NCBI RefSeq assembly: GCF_001194135.2
Contig: NC_068984.1
Location: forward strand, 127,297,226 to 127,361,225
Length of the DNA: 64,000 nt
Direction of reading: 5' to 3'
Source of the DNA: Octopus bimaculoides
Taxonomy: Eukaryota
Each line of letters begins with the position of its first letter. The first letter of the stretch is position 1. The notes under the pieces were generated by a model. It saw only the letters and a list, made by a program, of their open reading frames with translations, was not told where the DNA came from and did not search any database. Made by a program: the position numbers and the translations under genes. This document shows positions 10,481 to 59,384 of this stretch, piece by piece.

Positions 10481-10764
10481 AGCACAGTTAGGCACTGCTC
10501 ATATTATGTAAAGTACTTTCAATAGAAAAACACAAAAATAAAACACAGTACTTATTGTATTTTGTTGTACAGTGAATACATATAATAAAAATGAGACTAC
10601 TGAAACAACACCAGCAGCAGCTAATTTCTTTCATTGACCAACTGTTCTGATGATGTTTAGTGATGGTATAAATGTGAAATATCTTGGAAAGCAACAAACA
10701 AAGAACAGTGGGGAATTTGTTTAAATAAGAGAGTGTGATCAACCTTAACTATAACGATACAGCC

Positions 10765-11305
10765 TTAAGAAAAAAATTGGGCATAAAAGGCATCAGATAT
10801 TGTGTGAAAGAGAGAAGACTGTGCTGGTATGGTCATGTGATATGTACAGATAAGGACAGCTGTATAAAGAAGTGACAATCTCTAATTGTGGAGAGAGCCT
10901 GTGGAAGGGATAAACACAGGAAGATGTGGAATAAGGTGGTGAAATATGATCTTTGGTTGTTGAGTCTCATGGAGGTGATGACAAGTGACCAAGACTTCTG
11001 GTGATTTGCTGTGCTTGAGAAGACACATCAAGTTAAGTGAAATCATGGTTGTGGTCAGTAAAAGGCAACTGTGCTGATGACATGTAAAAGGGCATACATG
11101 TGGGTGACACATAAAAGGCATCCATGTTAGTGACAAGTAAAAGACACCTGGTACATTCTGTAAAGTGGTTGTTGACATTAGGAAGGGCATCCACACCAAA
11201 CCAAAAAAGATGACTAGGGCCTGGTGCAGCTCTCCAGCTCTGGTTAAACCATCTAACCCATACCAGCATGGAAAATGGATATTAAATGATGATGAGGATG
11301 ATGAT
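10765..11305 (+). mobile_element. RTE-clade LINE 3' end with (GAT)n tail
   Basis: LRKKLGIKGIRYCVKERRLCWYGHV...GRDKHRKMW, followed by a 3'UTR ending gcatggaaaatggatattaaatgatgatg. Confidence 0.8.
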
Positions 11306-14420: not shown

Positions 14421-16089
14421 TGTGGGGCAGACAGCAGACAGACGGAGAGAGAAGATATGCTAGCTGCATTTTCAGAACTGGTTACATGCTTCTTCATTGA
14501 TTGTAAAAATTAGGTGAAGAGTGTTTTGCATGAGAACAAAATGTTTGACAATAATATTTAATAAAGGAGTGACAGAAAGTCATTTGCTGGGATTTGTGAA
14601 GGTTAAAGGTTTAGACTGATAGATACAATTGTAAAATATTTTGTATCAGCTAATTTGCCCCTATTGATATAGCTTGGTCGGATATAATTCTAATAGCATT
14701 TTTGCATGGCTAACAAATTCTGTAGATGCTGACTCATGAGAAATATCTCAATCAAGATATTTCAATATATTAGAAAGATGTTTCAAATTTATTGTTTATC
14801 AGACCACTTTTGAATTGGCTGCTTGTCCAACTGAAGAACCTTGCTTGGTAGTAACCAGTTCCACTTAACTGTGAAGTTTGGTTGTTTTCTAAGTCTTGCC
14901 ATTATCTTGCCCTGTGACATGGCAGCTCCTTCACTCAGTCAGACAACTAGCTTCACCTTAAATTCGGTGTCAGAAGCTAGAAACTGATTGTTAAAACTGC
15001 CAGCACAGAAGATCAAGTTACATGAAATAGAAGAGAAAAGAAGAGCAAAGCATTTGATGGGATCATCTGAAGAGAGAAATAGATGCAGTACTTTGGTGTT
15101 AGCAACAACAACTATTGATCATTCTTTAACACTAGCACTTCTTTCTTCAACTAAACCAAATAATTATTGCTATGCATGTATGTCTACAGTTGTGTATGTC
15201 AGTATATAGATTTGAGTCAATGAATGTATGAGCACTTGTGTGAGTATAGTTGCCTCTGTTTGTATGAATATGAGCGTGTGTACAAATGTGTGCAATTGTG
15301 CATGAATACATGAGTATATATGTGTGAACTTGCATATGTTTATATGTATATGTAGAAGATTGTATGTATGTATCTTATCATTGTCAATACCGTTTTATGT
15401 CTGCATCACCATGTCACTGCATGGGTGGGAAAGGTCTTCTCCACTTGTTATAGTTCATTATCATTTTCTGTAGATCAAGCATCTTGAGAGGAGCTTTTGC
15501 TACTTCTTACTATGTCTTCTATTACAAGTTCCTTCAACTTCAATTATTTGACACCTCTTTACCCAACAGTAATCCTCCTTATACAGCACATATCTGTCCT
15601 AATTCTTTTTCTTTCTTTTGCACACTACATCTCATTCTGCTATCAACCAGTTTCTCTCCCAGTTCATTTGTGCAGTGTCTTTCATACACTCTAACATTAT
15701 ACAACTATTGAAGCATTCTTAACTCATTAACTTCTATCTTTCATATGTCCTCTACATTCAGTTCCCCTGCTTCAGTATAATGCATCATATAGTCTGCTCT
15801 TCACTCAGAGAGTGCCTCTGATCTTTAAAATGCAACATACTGTAAATGTCTCAGGTTTTCCTTCTCTCCTTGATATACATATATATCTGATGTCCAGATT
15901 TTTCTCTAGCTACTTGGTATTGTTGCTTCTCTTTTTCTTCCATTCTTTCCATACATGCCTCTTAACTTTTATACCTCTATCTACTATGCCATTCCAGCAC
16001 CAAATTACCTTCTGTTTGACTGGAATCATGCCTCATTCACAGATCTGGTCTGTGGCTTGGAGCAAGTTACCTTGTGGAAACTCTGAGTC

Positions 16090-37060: not shown

Positions 37061-38340
37061 TGCAACTCAGATAATTTACTTTTTCTCAAGTTAGTCTACC
37101 ATTCAGATTCTCCATGTATATCTAATGTAATCCTATGCTCTAAACATAAGGGGAAAAAACTGCAATCATTCATTTTACTTGACTAGACTAGATATTAAGA
37201 AGCAACCAAGCTAGAATGATCAAGAATATGAGGGTCTTTCAAAAAGAGTTCTGTTGGCTGATTATTAAGTTCTTTGATCCTCTGACTGTGACTTAACACA
37301 GAGCCAGCATCACTGACTCACTGTCCAATCAATTTGTTTGGTGCATTACATAAAATCAGATTACCATCAAAATTAACAACAGTGAACTAACAATCCAAAG
37401 ATAGAAGTGCTTCATTCAGATATGTTCAACTATGAATAGCTTGCTTTAGCTGAACTAGAACTTAATTCTGGTAAATGCTTAGCATCAACTACCAGCATTG
37501 TTTATTGTATTGATATAGCGCAGTAGAATTTCAGCTGTATTGATAGTCTACCTGGAATATCACTGCATCTTTTTAGCTGTCCTATCAGAAAAATTGATTA
37601 GAGACACATCATTGCAGTGCAACTACAAGGTGAACGTCCTGACTGCAAATATTTAATTCAACTTTGTATCTTTCAATTCAAACAATCACATCTATGTATT
37701 ACTTCTTTTTTTTTTTTTACCTGTGAGAAAGAGATACAAATACACAGGAATGAGACATAACAGAGTCTGCGTCTGAAACAAATTAAATAGCTATATTTAT
37801 ACGCTGGAATCTTGTCACTTTCTTTAAAATTAGCTTACTGATTACAAAGTGAGAAAGAAGAGCATCAGAAAGGAGGATGTAACAGATCAGAAAATTAAAA
37901 TTTGAATATTCAGGGTTTAATCTACCCCAGTTCAACTAAAAAAAAGACACACACGCACTGAGAGAAAGACAGAGAGAGAGAGAGAGAGAAAGAGACAGAC
38001 AGACAGAGAGAGGGAGAGAGAAAGAGACAGACAGAGAAACAGAGGGAAAGGGTAGAGAGAAAGAGAGAGAAAGATATTTCAATTACAAGCGTATTATTTT
38101 TGCTGCTACTTTTAAGAAAATTGGGTTATTTCCTGCAAGATGAATGTAGTCAGTAGCTGAAAGTTTTAAATTTATTTATGATCCAAACCAATTGCTTTTC
38201 TTTTCTATATAAATATTTCTTTTATTTAATGTTAAGGCAAGCTATCTTTTAATATGCAATTTCTACTCGAGAAGCATAAGATGAGAAAGTTATAACTAAA
38301 AGTTTATTTCTTCATACATTATTTATATATCTTGTATTCA

Positions 38341-46646: not shown

Positions 46647-46680
<34 letters not shown>

Positions 46681-47067
46681 NNNNNNNNNNNNNNNNNNNN
46701 NNNNNNNNNNNNNNNNNNNNNNNNNNNNNNNNNNNNNNNNNNNNNNNNNNNNNNNNNNNNNNNNNNNNNNNNNNNNNNNNNNNNNNNNNNNNNNNNNNNN
46801 NNNNNNNNNNNNNNNNNNNNNNNNNNNNNNNNNNNNNNNNNNNNNNNNNNNNNNNNNNNNNNNNNNNNNNNNNNNNNNNNNNNNNNNNNNNNNNNNNNNN
46901 NNNNNNNNNNNNNNNNNNNNNNNNNNNNNNNNNNNNNNNNNNNNNNNGGCGATATCGCCATCCGTTAGAGAAAAAATTGTAGTTTAGAATCAGTAGTTCC
47001 TTGACTGCTATTTCTAAATTTTCAGTATGTTGGTGAAGCAACTCATGCTGACCCCTATATATTTATG

Positions 47068-47886: not shown

Positions 47887-48298
47887 TTAAAGAATAAAAA
47901 GACTGGGTTAACAACTCAACATATCACACCCCCTCAATGAACATATATAAGAAATACAGCATAATCCGTCAAACATCCTCTGATTGTGCCGAAACCCGGG
48001 AATGGGAGGAGTGGAGCTATTGATAAGGATAGACAGGCAAGGACTGTTACTGGCACTCAAAATAAATTTAGGGGTGGCCAATGTAAATTATGTAATTGTA
48101 GAGACCCTCTATTATGTCCTTTGGGAGGGCTCTGTTTATGTACAAATGTGATATATAAGTGCACCGTCAGGGATGAGAACAAACTAAATAGGTTCTATAA
48201 GGGGTTCTTATAAGGTTGTTATCCACCCCTGATTGGAACTCTCCCGTATGACATGTGCACATGCTCAGTGACTTGCTTTAACTTCCGCAGATATGTTT

Positions 48299-48333
<35 letters not shown>

Positions 48334-49081
48334 NNNNNNNNNNNNNNNNNNNNNNNNNNNNNNNNNNNNNNNNNNNNNNNNNNNNNNNNNNNNNNNNNNN
48401 NNNNNNNNNNNNNNNNNNNNNNNNNNNNNNNNNNNNNNNNNNNNNNNNNNNNNNNNNNNNNNNNNNNNNNNNNNNNNNNNNNNNNNNNNNNNNNNNNNNN
48501 NNNNNNNNNNNNNNNNNNNNNNNNNNNNNNNNNNNNNNNNNNNNNNNNNNNNNNNNNNNNNNNNNNNNNNNNNNNNNNNNNNNNNNNNNNNNNNNNNNNN
48601 NNNNNNNNNNNNNNNNNNNNNNNNNNNNNNNNNNNNNNNNNNNNNNNNNNNNNNNNNNNNNNNNNNNNNNNNNNNNNNNNNNNNNNNNNNNNNNNNNNNN
48701 NNNNNNNNNNNNNNNNNNNNNNNNNNNNNNNNNNNNNNNNNNNNNNNNNNNNNNNNNNNNNNNNNNNNNNNNNNNNNNNNNNNNNNNNNNNNNNNNNNNN
48801 NNNNNNNNNNNNNNNNNNNNNNNNNNNNNNNNNNNNNNNNNNNNNNNNNNNNNNNNNNNNNNNNNNNNNNNNNNNNNNNNNNNNNNNNNNNNNNNNNNNN
48901 NNNNNNNNNNNNNNNNNNNNNNNNNNNNNNNNNNNNNNNNNNNNNNNNNNNNNNNNNNNNNNNNNNNNNNNNNNNNNNNNNNNNNNNNNNNNNNNNNNNN
49001 NNNNNNNNNNNNNNNNNNNNNNNNNNNNNNNNNNNNNNNNNNNNNNNNNNNNNNNNNNNNNNNNNNNNNNNNNNNNNNNNN
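48334..49081. other. Assembly gap (Ns); other gaps at 27613-27622 (approx.), 38443-38452, 46681-46947, 58231-58432
   Basis: Runs of N. The three large gaps each begin at a (TA)n tract. Confidence 0.98.
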
Positions 49082-49715
49082 CATACCAGCGCAATCGTCT
49101 CTCTTGCACACCACAACTGATGCTTCTTATGTTCAGCTTTTCTCTCAAGATACTTACACTCTGACGGGTATGCACACTGACATTACACATCCAACGGAGC
49201 ATACTGGCTTCATTCCTTGTGAGCTTACGCATGTCCTCAGCAGTCACAGCCCATGTTTCACTGCCATGTAGCATGGCTGTTCGTACACATGCATCATACA
49301 GTCTGCCTTTTACTCTGAGTGAGAGTCCGTTTGTCGTCAGCAGAGGTAAGAACTCTCTAAACTTTGCCCAGGCTATTCTTATTCTAGCAGCTACACTTTC
49401 AGCGCACCCACCCCCACTACTAACTTGGTCACCCAGATAGCGGAAGCTATCGACTACCTCTAGTTTTTCTCCCTGGAATGAGATAGAAGTTGTTTCCTGT
49501 TTGTTTACTGTGTTTATTGCACCTGAACATCTGCCACATACAAAAACTAACTTCCTAGTTAACCTGCCTTTGATATTGCTGCACCTCTTATGTGCCCATA
49601 GCTTGCACCGGGTACATCTTATAGAGTTACTACCTACTCCTTTTCTATATACTGAGCAGGGTCATCTACCTGAAGGGACAGCATTGAATCTAATATTCCT
49701 CTAATTATTAGACTT
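49082..49715 (-). mobile_element. RTE-clade LINE fragment (late RT with a Cys-rich insert), running into the gap
   Basis: PSGR*PCSVYRKGVGSNSIRCTRCKLWAHKRCSNIKG...VCGRC...MLHGSETWAVTAEDMRKLTRNEASMLRWMC...ERRLRWY. Confidence 0.9.
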
Positions 49716-49779
49716 TATAATGTGACTGTCCCTACCTCTTCTACACCTCATCATGCTCATGGCCAAATCAGCGAATGGT

Positions 49780-50055
49780 TGCTGAAAGCAGATTGGGATA
49801 AGGCAATACTTCCCTGAGAGGAGATATAAGCTCCTGCTTATTCCTGTCTGAAGTATCGTCCGATACTTCAGACTTATCGTCCGATGAATTTACTTTGTTG
49901 ACATTCTTCATCGACAGAATTTTTATACCTTTCAACCTTTCAGTCAAGTCCGCCTTTCTTCCAGTAACATACTGTCCCTATAATCTTAAATATTTCTTTA
50001 ACTCAGGCACAGTAAATACTTCGATAGCTGAATTATCGAGCTGCTTTATATCCAT
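49780..50055 (-). pseudogene. SAP-domain (DNA-binding) ORF fragment with one in-frame TAG
   Basis: MDIKQLDNSAIEVFTVPELKKYLRL*GQYVTGRKADLTERLKGIK... fits the SAP pattern xVxELKxxLxxxGxxxxGxKxxLxxRL. It is missed by the ORF track because of the stop at 49978-49980. Confidence 0.7.
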
Positions 50056-50187
50056 GATAAGACGTAAAACAATAACAATAGCGTGGATAGTCTGCGGAAG
50101 TTTAATTGTCTACATAGAGCGCCGCCTAGCCAAGGGAGATAACCTACTTATAGGCAAGCCCTATATAGGAAGCACGAAGAACTTTAA

Positions 50188-50653
50188 CCCTTTCGTTACT
50201 AACCCGGCCGAAAAATTTGTTTGGTTCATAAGACCAACCCGGCCGTAGCCGGCCGAGAGTACCCATTGTTATTTAAATGTATATTTGAACCCAAATCTCG
50301 TTATAACATTCATTAAAACACCTGATTCCACTTTGCAAACAGTTCAGTTATTGTCTCCGACATTGTTGGCGTGATATTTGAAATCAGTGAATTTTGGAAG
50401 ATTTTTTCCACATTTTTTGAGGCGTTAATTTTTTTCAACTTTGAAGATGGAGAGGAGTTTCGTGCTATCAAGCAGTGATTCCGAATTTGAAGGTTTTTCA
50501 ACAGAAGATATCGAGATATCGAAGAAAAGAATGAATGAGCTACAAAAGCACGTGGTGAACGATAATGAGACTAGTCTAAATTCATGATTATTTTAGAATT
50601 TAATTGGAACTCATGAGGGGTGTATTTTGGTCAGAAATATAGTAACGAAAGGG
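50188..50653. mobile_element. TTAA-target (piggyBac-type) MITE, 466 bp
   Basis: TTAA at 50184-50187 and 50654-50657. Perfect 14-bp TIR ccctttcgttacta. Confidence 0.93.
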
Positions 50654-52140
50654 TTAAGGCTAGATATAGAGCGCATATGAGTTCGTTTTCAATGGAAAAA
50701 TACAGTAACTCTACCACACTCGCCTCTTATCTACATGGCCTCAAGAAGAAGATAAGGTACTCTCTTGAATGGTCTATTATAGCGAAGGCCCCATACTTTA
50801 AGGCAAATATTAGCAAATGTTCTTTACGTATTAGGGAATCCCTTGCGATTCTCAGGTCTTTTGGACCAAAAACCCCGAATAAGTTCACGGAGGTAGTCCC
50901 CTTCTGCAACTATAAGTTTTCCTCCACCTTCTTGAAACTGCATAGAGATAAAAATAAATTTAAAAGTAATAAATAATAACAAGTGTAATAGTTTACGTTA
51001 GGGTGAATTGAAACCTTGTAGATTGGTTTTGATACTGCAGCCTGTTTGGCTATTCTAAAATGGCACATTTTTTTTTTTTTTTTGAATCCTCCAATTATTT
51101 ACATAGGCTGGTCCATTTTGTTTATATATATTTGCTCTTTAGAGAAATCATTTTTTCTTTTCTCTTTGTGCATGTCGTGACGTTGTACGTGTGTTTACCT
51201 TGACGAGGGGGGTCATCACTAATTTACACTCTATTGTGTTTTGAAATACAGTGGTGCACTTCTGAAATGGCCATAGGTATTGTATGAAATTCGTGAAAGT
51301 GTTTTTACTGATGGATACCTGCGCTGTGCTGTAATTGTTTTTGACTCATCTGTGGTGAACCTTTTTTGACATGGTGAGCGGAATTGAACTTTGCCTGCTG
51401 ATACCTGCTGGGTGCCTGTTGTTCGCTCTTGTGTGTGCCGGATTGGTGCGAACTTGCCTTTTGGTATCTACTGGTTTTGAGGTGTGAAATGTGTCCGAGG
51501 GAATTGAAGAACTTTAATTCTAAGTGGTGTTAAATCACTTCTGACCTTGTTTTTTCAACCGATAGACTACTTTATGGTACCTCATTTATTCATGTCATTT
51601 TATTTTACTATATCGACTTATTTTATATTATATTATATTATATATTTGAAATTTTTACTCCTTCCGTATTAATTTTTATTCGTATTAATTTTAACTTTTT
51701 TATCTTCTATGAAATGATATTCACGTGTATTGCTTTATACCTTTAACTCAAATTTTTTCAGTTCCATGTTATCGGTTGAAACAAGATATTCGTGTATAAA
51801 AATTTTATACTATATGCTATATTTTTTATTTATTTATTATTTCTTCTTGCGTTATTTCTTCTTATTCCTTATGTTTGACGGATTATGCTGTATTTCTTAT
51901 ATATGTTCATTGAGCGGGTGTGATATGTTGAGTCGTTAACCCAGTCATTTTATTCTTGTCTCAGTTATTCTGAGCATTTCTCCTTGCAGCCCTGTATAAA
52001 ATCTATTGGTTTCCTAATAAGAAACCATTAATATAAATAAATATATATATATAATCATGTGGTGGGAAAGCTGACTCTTTATCACACAGCACCTCGATAA
52101 CTATTTTACAGTATACAAAGTATGTTACACAACATAACTA

Positions 52141-58039: not shown

Positions 58040-58164
58040 GTACACTTATGAAAACATGTGCATGCATATGTGAGTGTATATAAGTATATTCAATTAATCA
58101 ATTATTTAATTATGTACAGATGTACTTTTATATGTAAGCAAGTCTCTGTATGTGTGTGTGTATG

Positions 58165-58208
<44 letters not shown>

Positions 58209-59384
58209 CATATATATATATATATATATANNNNNNNNNNNNNNNNNNNNNNNNNNNNNNNNNNNNNNNNNNNNNNNNNNNNNNNNNNNNNNNNNNNNNN
58301 NNNNNNNNNNNNNNNNNNNNNNNNNNNNNNNNNNNNNNNNNNNNNNNNNNNNNNNNNNNNNNNNNNNNNNNNNNNNNNNNNNNNNNNNNNNNNNNNNNNN
58401 NNNNNNNNNNNNNNNNNNNNNNNNNNNNNNNNTAATATAGGTAGTGTAACTAAATATATATACACATGCTCCATTTAGCTTTCCTAATTACTTATATCAG
58501 AATATTTTCAAAATTACATGCTATGATCACATCATAATAGTATTTTACAGAATATTGTACTGGCTTCCATGACAAAGCTATAAATATATCTTGTGGAAAT
58601 TTTGAATCACAATTTGAACAGTGCTTTCTCACAGAAAACTATATTCCTACATAACTAACCCCTGTAATATTTTCAGGTAATTATGTAACTTAACATCTTC
58701 TATGCTGGCATGGATCACACAGTTAGACAGGAGCTAGTAAACCAGAGGACTGTGCCACCCTTTTGATATGGTTTTTACAGCTGGATGCCCCTCCTAATGC
58801 CAACCACTGTACAGAATGGACTGATGTTTTTTTATGTAGCACCAGTACCAGCAAGATCACCAAGTAATTTGCAACATAAAGTCCCCTTAAATGAGAGAGG
58901 GAGTGGTATTGAGGAAGGTGGCTTTTGCCTGGTGATGAGGGGTTAGAGTATGACAGTGGTATAGAAACAAGTGTCTTGCTGTAGAGGATATACATGATTA
59001 CCCCAGTCAGGGAAGGAGATAGGGTTAAAGAGAGTGAGAGAAAGAGAGACGGTGGCAATGGACCAGGGCATACTCTTAAGGTACAAAGAGGTGAATATAA
59101 ATGGAATGGTAGAGGGGGGCAAAGCACTGAGTGGTATACACAGGTATATGGGAGGAGGGGTACAGATGACAGGATATATATATATATATATAAAATCTGA
59201 AGTGGCAGAAAAATAACAGTGAATCACTATGTGCAAAACAGAGGTCAATAAACAAATACAAGAATGAAACAATGCCCAAATTATAAGCATACCACTAAAA
59301 CTGAGTTATTACAGTTCTTGCCTGAAGATTATGGTGTTGTGAAACTTGAGTCACAAGAAAAACATTCAGTTTTAATAAACTGTA

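Follow-up and report, generated by a model that had tools for sequence, protein, structure and literature searches.

Positions 48200-50162 of a 64,000-nt stretch of Octopus bimaculoides DNA (contig NC_068984.1, positions 127,297,226 to 127,361,225 of the forward strand; hereafter the window, AT-rich with about 34% GC) very probably carry a DNA transposon copy of the ISL2EU group (PHIS or PIF/Harbinger-like superfamily) that is dead and non-autonomous. It retains roughly 100 nt at the transposase side, about 107 nt at the opposite end and, from the second gene, the first 85 codons. The copy was regarded as dead because a nonsense codon lies within its SAP motif, a fragment resembling a long interspersed nuclear element (LINE) interrupts it, and no transposase, SWIM or YqaJ sequence was found in the part that can be read. 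By homology, the SAP open reading frame (ORF) is the leftover start of the gene that is usually the second one of ISL2EU elements. An initial annotation of the window had described a DNA transposon with terminal inverted repeats (TIRs) and a SAP-led ORF that fitted no family cleanly and might be undescribed. The insertion itself was borne out, as joining the empty site restores a host ORF, and the remark that SAP-led ORFs occur together with YqaJ in ISL2EU-like elements was correct (Mya, Sinanodonta, PMC4482050). The placement outside known families was not upheld: the pairing of SAP-SWIM-YqaJ with DDE_Tnp_4 genes in relatives and termini homologous to those of a Sinanodonta element identify ISL2EU, so that an already named family does apply at the level of the group.

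The SAP reading frame and its full-length relatives

The SAP ORF was read from the minus strand, with an ATG at 50055, which is 107 nt inside position 50162, and a stop at 49768, giving a translation of 95 aa. Its first 85 codons (49801-50055, minus strand) constitute the first coding block of a SAP-SWIM-YqaJ gene remnant and hold the SAP motif and a Ser/Asp-rich linker. The translation, which reads MDIKQLDNSAIEVFTVPELKKYLRL up to an in-frame stop and GQYVTGRKADLTERLKGIKILSMKNVNKVNSSDDKSEVSDDTSDRNKQELISPLREVLP... after it, was matched by the Pfam SAP model PF02037 at 23.8 bits (E 3.4e-5), just below the cut-off of 23.9, in keeping with the SAP motif proposed initially, and the linker SSDDKSEVSDDTSD follows the match. 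The position of the ORF about 107 nt inside the right end and its acidic linker had thus been described correctly, while an in-frame TAG at codon 26 (49978-49980), within the SAP motif, had gone unmentioned.

The ORF matched at least 13 short (63-151 aa) O. bimaculoides models annotated as 'SAP domain-containing protein' at 82-94% identity. Judged from these matches, it is a repeat present in multiple copies in O. bimaculoides. As codon 26 encodes tyrosine in all of the matched octopus copies, the TAG of the window copy is read as a nonsense mutation. The region upstream of the ATG is likewise conserved among octopus copies, to at least 50115, and forms the N-terminal extension of one model (P0013). 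Several of the models go on as ...AKQQLRSGIFYHDRHVHSIEYHDVSESCSHCIV...NVHSADCNC and end there; this '...SADCNC' aligns with the start of the SWIM finger (C.C.AG.GE.CNH) of longer relatives.

An exhaustive HMMER search with the longest octopus model returned 80 relatives, the long ones of which (554-599 aa) consist of SAP, SWIM and a YqaJ-like exonuclease. Proteins of this architecture (about 570 aa) were observed in many bivalves and gastropods, often as several near-identical copies per genome. The window ORF, from which the YqaJ part is missing, is 40% identical to the N-terminus of one of them, the Sinanodonta protein P0017 (E 1e-16), and a longer octopus model (P0004) is 49% identical to the N-terminus of Sinanodonta ORF2. 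A clear SAP, SWIM and YqaJ architecture can in this way be given for the accessory protein of mollusc ISL2EU elements, and the numerous O. bimaculoides 'SAP domain-containing protein' models in UniProt are transposon remnants.

A full-length octopus protein was not found, a query with the second coding block returning only the same shortened models ending in ...CNC, and exact-protein look-ups with P0004, P0010, P0009 and one window ORF gave no record. Other cephalopods were not found in the clusters of the closest partial matches, which gave Haliotis, Solemya or metagenome contigs. Within the 64-kb window, the element ends and SAP region had no further copy.

Two shortened or fused forms were seen alongside these relatives. 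In one O. bimaculoides gene model of 278 aa (P0018, A0A0L8I7X3), the SAP block and the start of the second block are fused with a Kazal-type domain and a tail rich in acidic residues; the model stems either from chimeric annotation or from exonisation of a transposon fragment. In Sinanodonta woodiana, a shortened copy (L016 5898-6429) codes only for a 142-aa SAP-led protein that resembles the short octopus models, which suggests that short SAP-only derivatives arise repeatedly in the ISL2EU lineage.

Autonomous elements in other molluscs and shared termini

In Mya arenaria, a 581-aa SAP-YqaJ protein was located at 10 or more loci (at least 10), each within a common 6.49-kb block of >99.9% identity. 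The block is limited by the inverted repeats TGTCCTTTCCGATAAC...GTTATCGGAAAGGACA, with AT flanking both sides, and the SAP-YqaJ gene in it is convergent with a gene matching THAP, HTH_Tnp_4 and DDE_Tnp_4. At one Mya locus (L002 9913-22559, CP111013.1) two full ISL2EU copies stand head to tail with a single AT between them (...GGAAAGGACA-AT-TGTCCTTTCC...), and these tandem copies appear to share one target duplication. The same convergent gene pair was found in Sinanodonta woodiana (GCA_046254885.1) in a 4564-bp element (L011 7901-12464) with the ends AGGGCATTCC...GGAATGCCCT, and in Haliotis an unannotated transposase homolog lies next to the SAP-YqaJ gene. Convergent pairing of a THAP/HTH_Tnp_4/DDE_Tnp_4 transposase with a SAP-SWIM-YqaJ protein matches the published definition of ISL2EU (PMC4482050, PMC4122938, PMC9179366).

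Given these pairs, it is hardly credible that the element represents a transposon superfamily not yet described, with SAP as its DNA-binding module. Such a reading could draw on the lack of a transposase in the window and on a target-site duplication (TSD) that looks like a 3-bp ATA, not the TWA of PIF/Harbinger; however, in three other molluscs SAP-SWIM-YqaJ proteins have transposases of the ISL2EU type as partners, the Sinanodonta ISL2EU element has termini homologous to the octopus ones, and the architecture has already been published.

In autonomous ISL2EU members, two convergent genes each start about 90-120 nt inside one end, the first encoding a THAP, HTH (helix-turn-helix) and DDE_Tnp_4 transposase and the second a SAP, SWIM and YqaJ (lambda-exonuclease-like) protein. 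From their domains and the literature, the transposase would bind the TIRs, excise the element and insert it anew at AT within a TATA-like target, so duplicating that AT, and the SAP/SWIM part would tether the exonuclease to DNA, probably for break processing or donor-site repair. The present copy lies inserted in the part of another repeat that encodes GIY-YIG, and the LINE-like fragment interrupts it.

The transposase-side terminal region of the octopus copy (48199-48301, plus strand) consists of the TIR (A)AGGGGTTCTTATAAGGTTGTTATCC and the subterminal motif TTTAACTTCCGCAGA (48277-48291), and no transposase gene follows it. The SAP-gene-side terminal region (50056-50162, minus strand) comprises a 5' leader or promoter, the subterminal motif TCTGCGGAAGTTTAA (50091-50105) and a TIR ending in ...GGCAAGCCCT. 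Compared with the matching ends of the Sinanodonta element, the octopus transposase side (48199-48298) gave z = 15.1 and the SAP-gene side (50162-50063) z = 11.7, neither score being reached in 300 shuffles (0/300 each). Shared between the two elements are the AGGGC terminus, the ATAAG..GTTAT block and the AACTTCCG subterminal motif; the transposase side further has CCCCT.ATT.GGAACTCT in common and the SAP side TAGG.GGCGCT. The elements differ in that the Sinanodonta one is full-length with both genes apparently intact, and in the extra A at the left terminus of the octopus copy. The 100-nt octopus ends matched each other weakly (z = 1.8, a score reached by 15 of 300 shuffles). The AGGG..CCCT ends, the 12-bp subterminal motif and the flanking ATA on both sides that had been reported initially were all found as described, with this weakness of the match between the ends.

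Both octopus ends carry the perfect 12-nt inverted subterminal motif, as AACTTCCGCAGA at 48280-48291 and as its complement at 50091-50102, and the match reaches 15 nt with one mismatch. Its core, ACTTCCG, was invariant in all six of the ends aligned and is present at both Haliotis ends as well. In Mya, Sinanodonta, Haliotis and octopus the core, which can be extended to roughly AACTTCCGSRGRMTAT, is found at both ends, some 60-90 nt in from the terminus and upstream of the gene that points inward from there; its positions are L003 9990-10000 and 16310-16325, L011 7965-7975 and 12375-12390, L012 7977, 13326 and 13346, and 48280-48291 and 50091-50102 in the window. Judging from this recurrence, the 12-bp motif is a conserved feature of the ISL2EU lineage, and it might serve as a promoter element or be bound by the transposase. 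ACTTCCG includes a GGAA core resembling an ETS-type site. As a sequence shared by all ends examined it is a concrete candidate for a site of protein binding or promoter function in a little-studied group.

The two sides of the octopus copy were also found joined in a protein model. The minus-strand translation of the left end, SKSLSM.TCHTGEFQSGVDN.L, matches the tail of P0015, which runs into SSKSLSMRTCHTGEFQSGVDNTL, that is, the minus-strand translation of the window from 48277 down to 48215. As P0015 thereby joins the SAP ORF to the left-end translation, both belong to the same repeat family.

The distance from the ATG of the SAP-led gene to the element end is 107 nt in octopus, 100 nt in Sinanodonta and 86 nt in Mya. 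This bears on the possibility, allowed for in the initial annotation, that the SAP exon is a piece of host gene captured inside an unrelated miniature inverted-repeat transposable element. SAP is common in host nuclear proteins and P0018 does fuse the SAP exon to Kazal-domain sequence, but a gene that starts 86-107 nt inside the same conserved end in all three molluscs, and homology to the transposon protein from residue 6 onward, make capture exceedingly improbable. The conserved end and gene start assign the SAP ORF to the element, not to a host exon.

Between mussel (unionid) and octopus, the 100-nt termini are roughly 70% identical while the proteins are only 40-49% identical. Horizontal transfer among molluscs, instead of constraint on protein-binding sites, might underlie this difference. 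The many octopus copies in which a short SAP or SAP-SWIM-start ORF (~100-150 aa) is still open might encode truncated DNA-binding proteins and interfere through them with full-length ISL2EU proteins, in the manner of the P-element KP repressor. Taken jointly, interference and horizontal transfer behind the conserved termini are considered unlikely, and the window copy is dead under either.

Insertion site, target-site duplication and classification

The left end at 48200 reads ...ttctata followed by AGGGGTTCTTATAAGG (over 48190-48210, aggttctata followed by AGGGGTTCTTATAAGG) and the right end, finishing at 50162, reads ...GGCAAGCCCT followed by atatagg (over 50150-50170, ATAGGCAAGCCCT followed by atataggaag). 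The termini are therefore AGGG..CCCT with ATA flanking each side, or TATA with GCCC as the right end. Excision of 48200-50165 (1966 nt), together with a TTAA-flanked miniature element nearby, gave a single uninterrupted host ORF that runs from ...CKLCNCRDPLLCPLGGLCLCTNVIYKCTVRDENKLNRFY through IGSTKNF to KARYRAHMSSFSMEK..., with the junction after ...NVIYKCTVRDENKLNRFY. The Y-I-G codons of a GIY-YIG motif were rebuilt exactly over the excision junction, and a Pfam GIY-YIG match covers both joins (21.3 bits, E 3.4e-4, cut-off 22.6). Positions 48199/48200 and 50162 are regarded as genuine termini because the host ORF is restored on their removal and because each end is homologous to an end of an autonomous element.

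The restored frame also bears on whether the two ends stem from different elements misjoined across the assembly gap between them. The 748-N gap is of estimated length and the ends match each other weakly (z = 1.8); nevertheless, the outer flanks join as one continuous GIY-YIG ORF with YIG exactly restored, which indicates that both sides of the gap belong to one insertion and that scaffold order and orientation are right, and the octopus ends correspond, each oriented as expected, to the two opposite ends of a single Sinanodonta element. A misjoin is on these grounds extremely unlikely.

The empty-site join fixes the element plus its duplication at 1966 nt. Three readings of the duplication fit the flanks and the join equally well in this single copy, namely AT/AT (element 48199-50162), ATA/ATA (element 48200-50162) and TATA/TATA (right end as GCCC). 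By the family rule the left TSD copy is AT at 48197-48198 (alternatives ATA at 48197-48199 and TATA at 48196-48199) and the right copy is AT at 50163-50164 (alternative ATA at 50163-50165). A TAA/TAT duplication with GGGG...CCC ends was rejected, as it excises 1964 nt and interrupts the restored host frame with a stop codon (checked by hand).

The Sinanodonta insertions bear on these readings. The four full-length loci amount to three independent insertions, since two of the loci share identical flanks. With one truncated copy added, the pattern is (t/a)AT-AGGGC...GCCCT-AT-a, with TAT, TAT, AAT and TAT on the left and ATA, ATA and ATA on the right. Only AT is duplicated; left and right flanks do not agree over 3 bp, so the 3-bp reading fails there and the duplication is a 2-bp AT in a TATA-like target. 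The octopus pre-insertion site, TTC-TATA-TAGG, agrees with the T-AT-A pattern of these copies. Because of this agreement, and because the left end is merely one A longer, the duplication of this single octopus copy is most likely the 2-bp AT of ISL2EU. The octopus ends and TSD given here are those of the window copy alone.

The 3-bp duplication and the hint at PIF/Harbinger given initially were accordingly probably misread, the closest autonomous relatives duplicating a 2-bp AT. PIF/Harbinger elements make a 3-bp TWA duplication and carry a Myb/SANT second ORF, and Pangu elements duplicate ANT. PIF/Harbinger proper resembles the octopus element and its relatives in superfamily, in the DDE_Tnp_4-type transposase of the relatives, in having two genes and in its AT-rich targets. 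A PIF/Harbinger-proper element, or another PHIS member with a 3-bp TSD and a true ATA duplication, would explain why a perfect ATA flanks ends that are positionally homologous to AGGGC...GCCCT. However, ATA is neither TWA (TAA/TTA) nor ANT, the second ORF is SAP-led rather than Myb/SANT, the Sinanodonta relatives with homologous ends duplicate AT only, and ten Mya copies show AT; such an element is very unlikely. Kolobok, named as a possible relative in the initial annotation, was also considered, its transposases having a THAP domain in common with the relatives of the octopus copy. Kolobok elements duplicate TTAA. The group was rejected, as its transposase is different and the octopus flanks are TATA and ATAT with no TTAA, the TTAA at 50184 belonging to the neighbouring piggyBac-like element.

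Assignment to ISL2EU (IS3EU; Han et al. 2014, 2015) agrees with a second ORF that is DNA-binding-led and, in full-length relatives, has a YqaJ exonuclease at its end, with homologous autonomous elements encoding THAP, HTH and DDE_Tnp_4, with TIRs that are shared with the autonomous Sinanodonta member, and with flanks that can be read as a 2-bp AT duplication in an AT-rich target. The DDE_Tnp_4/HTH/THAP transposase is absent from the readable window, as would be expected of a non-autonomous copy, and adjoins the homologous gene in Mya (10 loci), Sinanodonta (4 loci) and Haliotis. Several points weigh against the assignment. The octopus copy is short, internally deleted and LINE-interrupted, and the window itself contains no transposase, SWIM or YqaJ, so that membership is founded on the homology of the ORF remnant and the ends. 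In ISL2EU elements as published, the TIRs usually begin with GG and the target is A-AT-T, whereas the ends here start (A)AGGG and the target is T-AT-A. The left end is one A longer than the homologous Sinanodonta end, and the octopus copy may carry a genuine 3-bp ATA duplication.

The region would thus be masked as a non-autonomous element of DNA/PIF-ISL2EU, which we take to be the RepeatMasker class of the group, with a nested LINE-like fragment, and not be annotated as a gene. Relevance beyond annotation is small, the feature being real but ordinary.

Interior of the element and neighbouring repeats

The interior is interrupted by an assembly gap of 748 N (estimated length, 48334-49081) that lies wholly inside the element. 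On its left the gap is abutted by a (TA)16 microsatellite (48302-48333), which may belong to the element, represent the tail of a LINE or be a separate repeat, and on its right by a minus-strand LINE-like frame (...ERRLRWY) that is still open at 49083. The SAP ORF (50055-49768) lies entirely to the right of the gap and is unaffected by it. The long frames listed as spanning the gap consist of X and are artefacts. All three of the long gaps in the window adjoin (TA)n (46650-46947, 48302-49081 and 58150-58432). The gaps are for this reason probably breaks in the assembly caused by microsatellites, that is, unassembled TA repeats rather than missing unique sequence. The gap inside the element probably contains the rest of the LINE-like fragment and more (TA)n, and perhaps further element interior.

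The other octopus SAP copies are homologous only as far as 49801. Between this point and the gap, one minus-strand frame with two stops reads ...PFADLAMS...PCSVYRKGVGSNSIRCTRCKLWAHKRCSNIKGRL...FVCGRC...YLGDQVSSGGG...RIRIAWAKFREFLPLL...LSLRVKGRLYDACVRTAMLHGSETWAV...RRLRWY. This 5'-truncated LINE-like fragment (49082-49800, minus strand) has a PHD-like finger embedded in it; from the motifs FADD ... YLG ... RRLRW we take it to be the C-terminal half of a non-LTR retrotransposon (LINE) reverse transcriptase, from the FAD(D) motif on. Pfam, NCBIfam and PDB sequence searches with the fragment gave the PHD-like finger only (C..C...C..C..H..C....C..C), and tblastn within the window gave only degenerate relatives, at about 15612-15788, 10759-10830 and 37517-37573. 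A tblastx comparison of the whole Mya element with the window matched the SAP exon only, with no transposase, SWIM or YqaJ in the readable part.

The host of both insertions (47980-48198, 50166-50187 and 50658-50973) is a repeat-like ORF of ~186 aa in which a Cys-rich motif is followed by a GIY-YIG nuclease domain, and which presumably resembles the endonuclease domain of Penelope-like elements. No second copy of the GIY-YIG repeat that could serve as a paralogous empty site was found within the 64-kb window. The other insertion in this ORF, 22 nt from the ISL2EU copy, is a piggyBac-like miniature element of 466 bp at 50188-50653 (50184-50657 with its TTAA flanks). It has perfect 14-nt TIRs (CCCTTTCGTTACTA and TAGTAACGAAAGGG) with TTAA on each side, and its short ORF, MERSFVLSSSDSEFEGFSTEDIEISKKRMNELQKH..., resembles the remnant of a transposase N-terminus.

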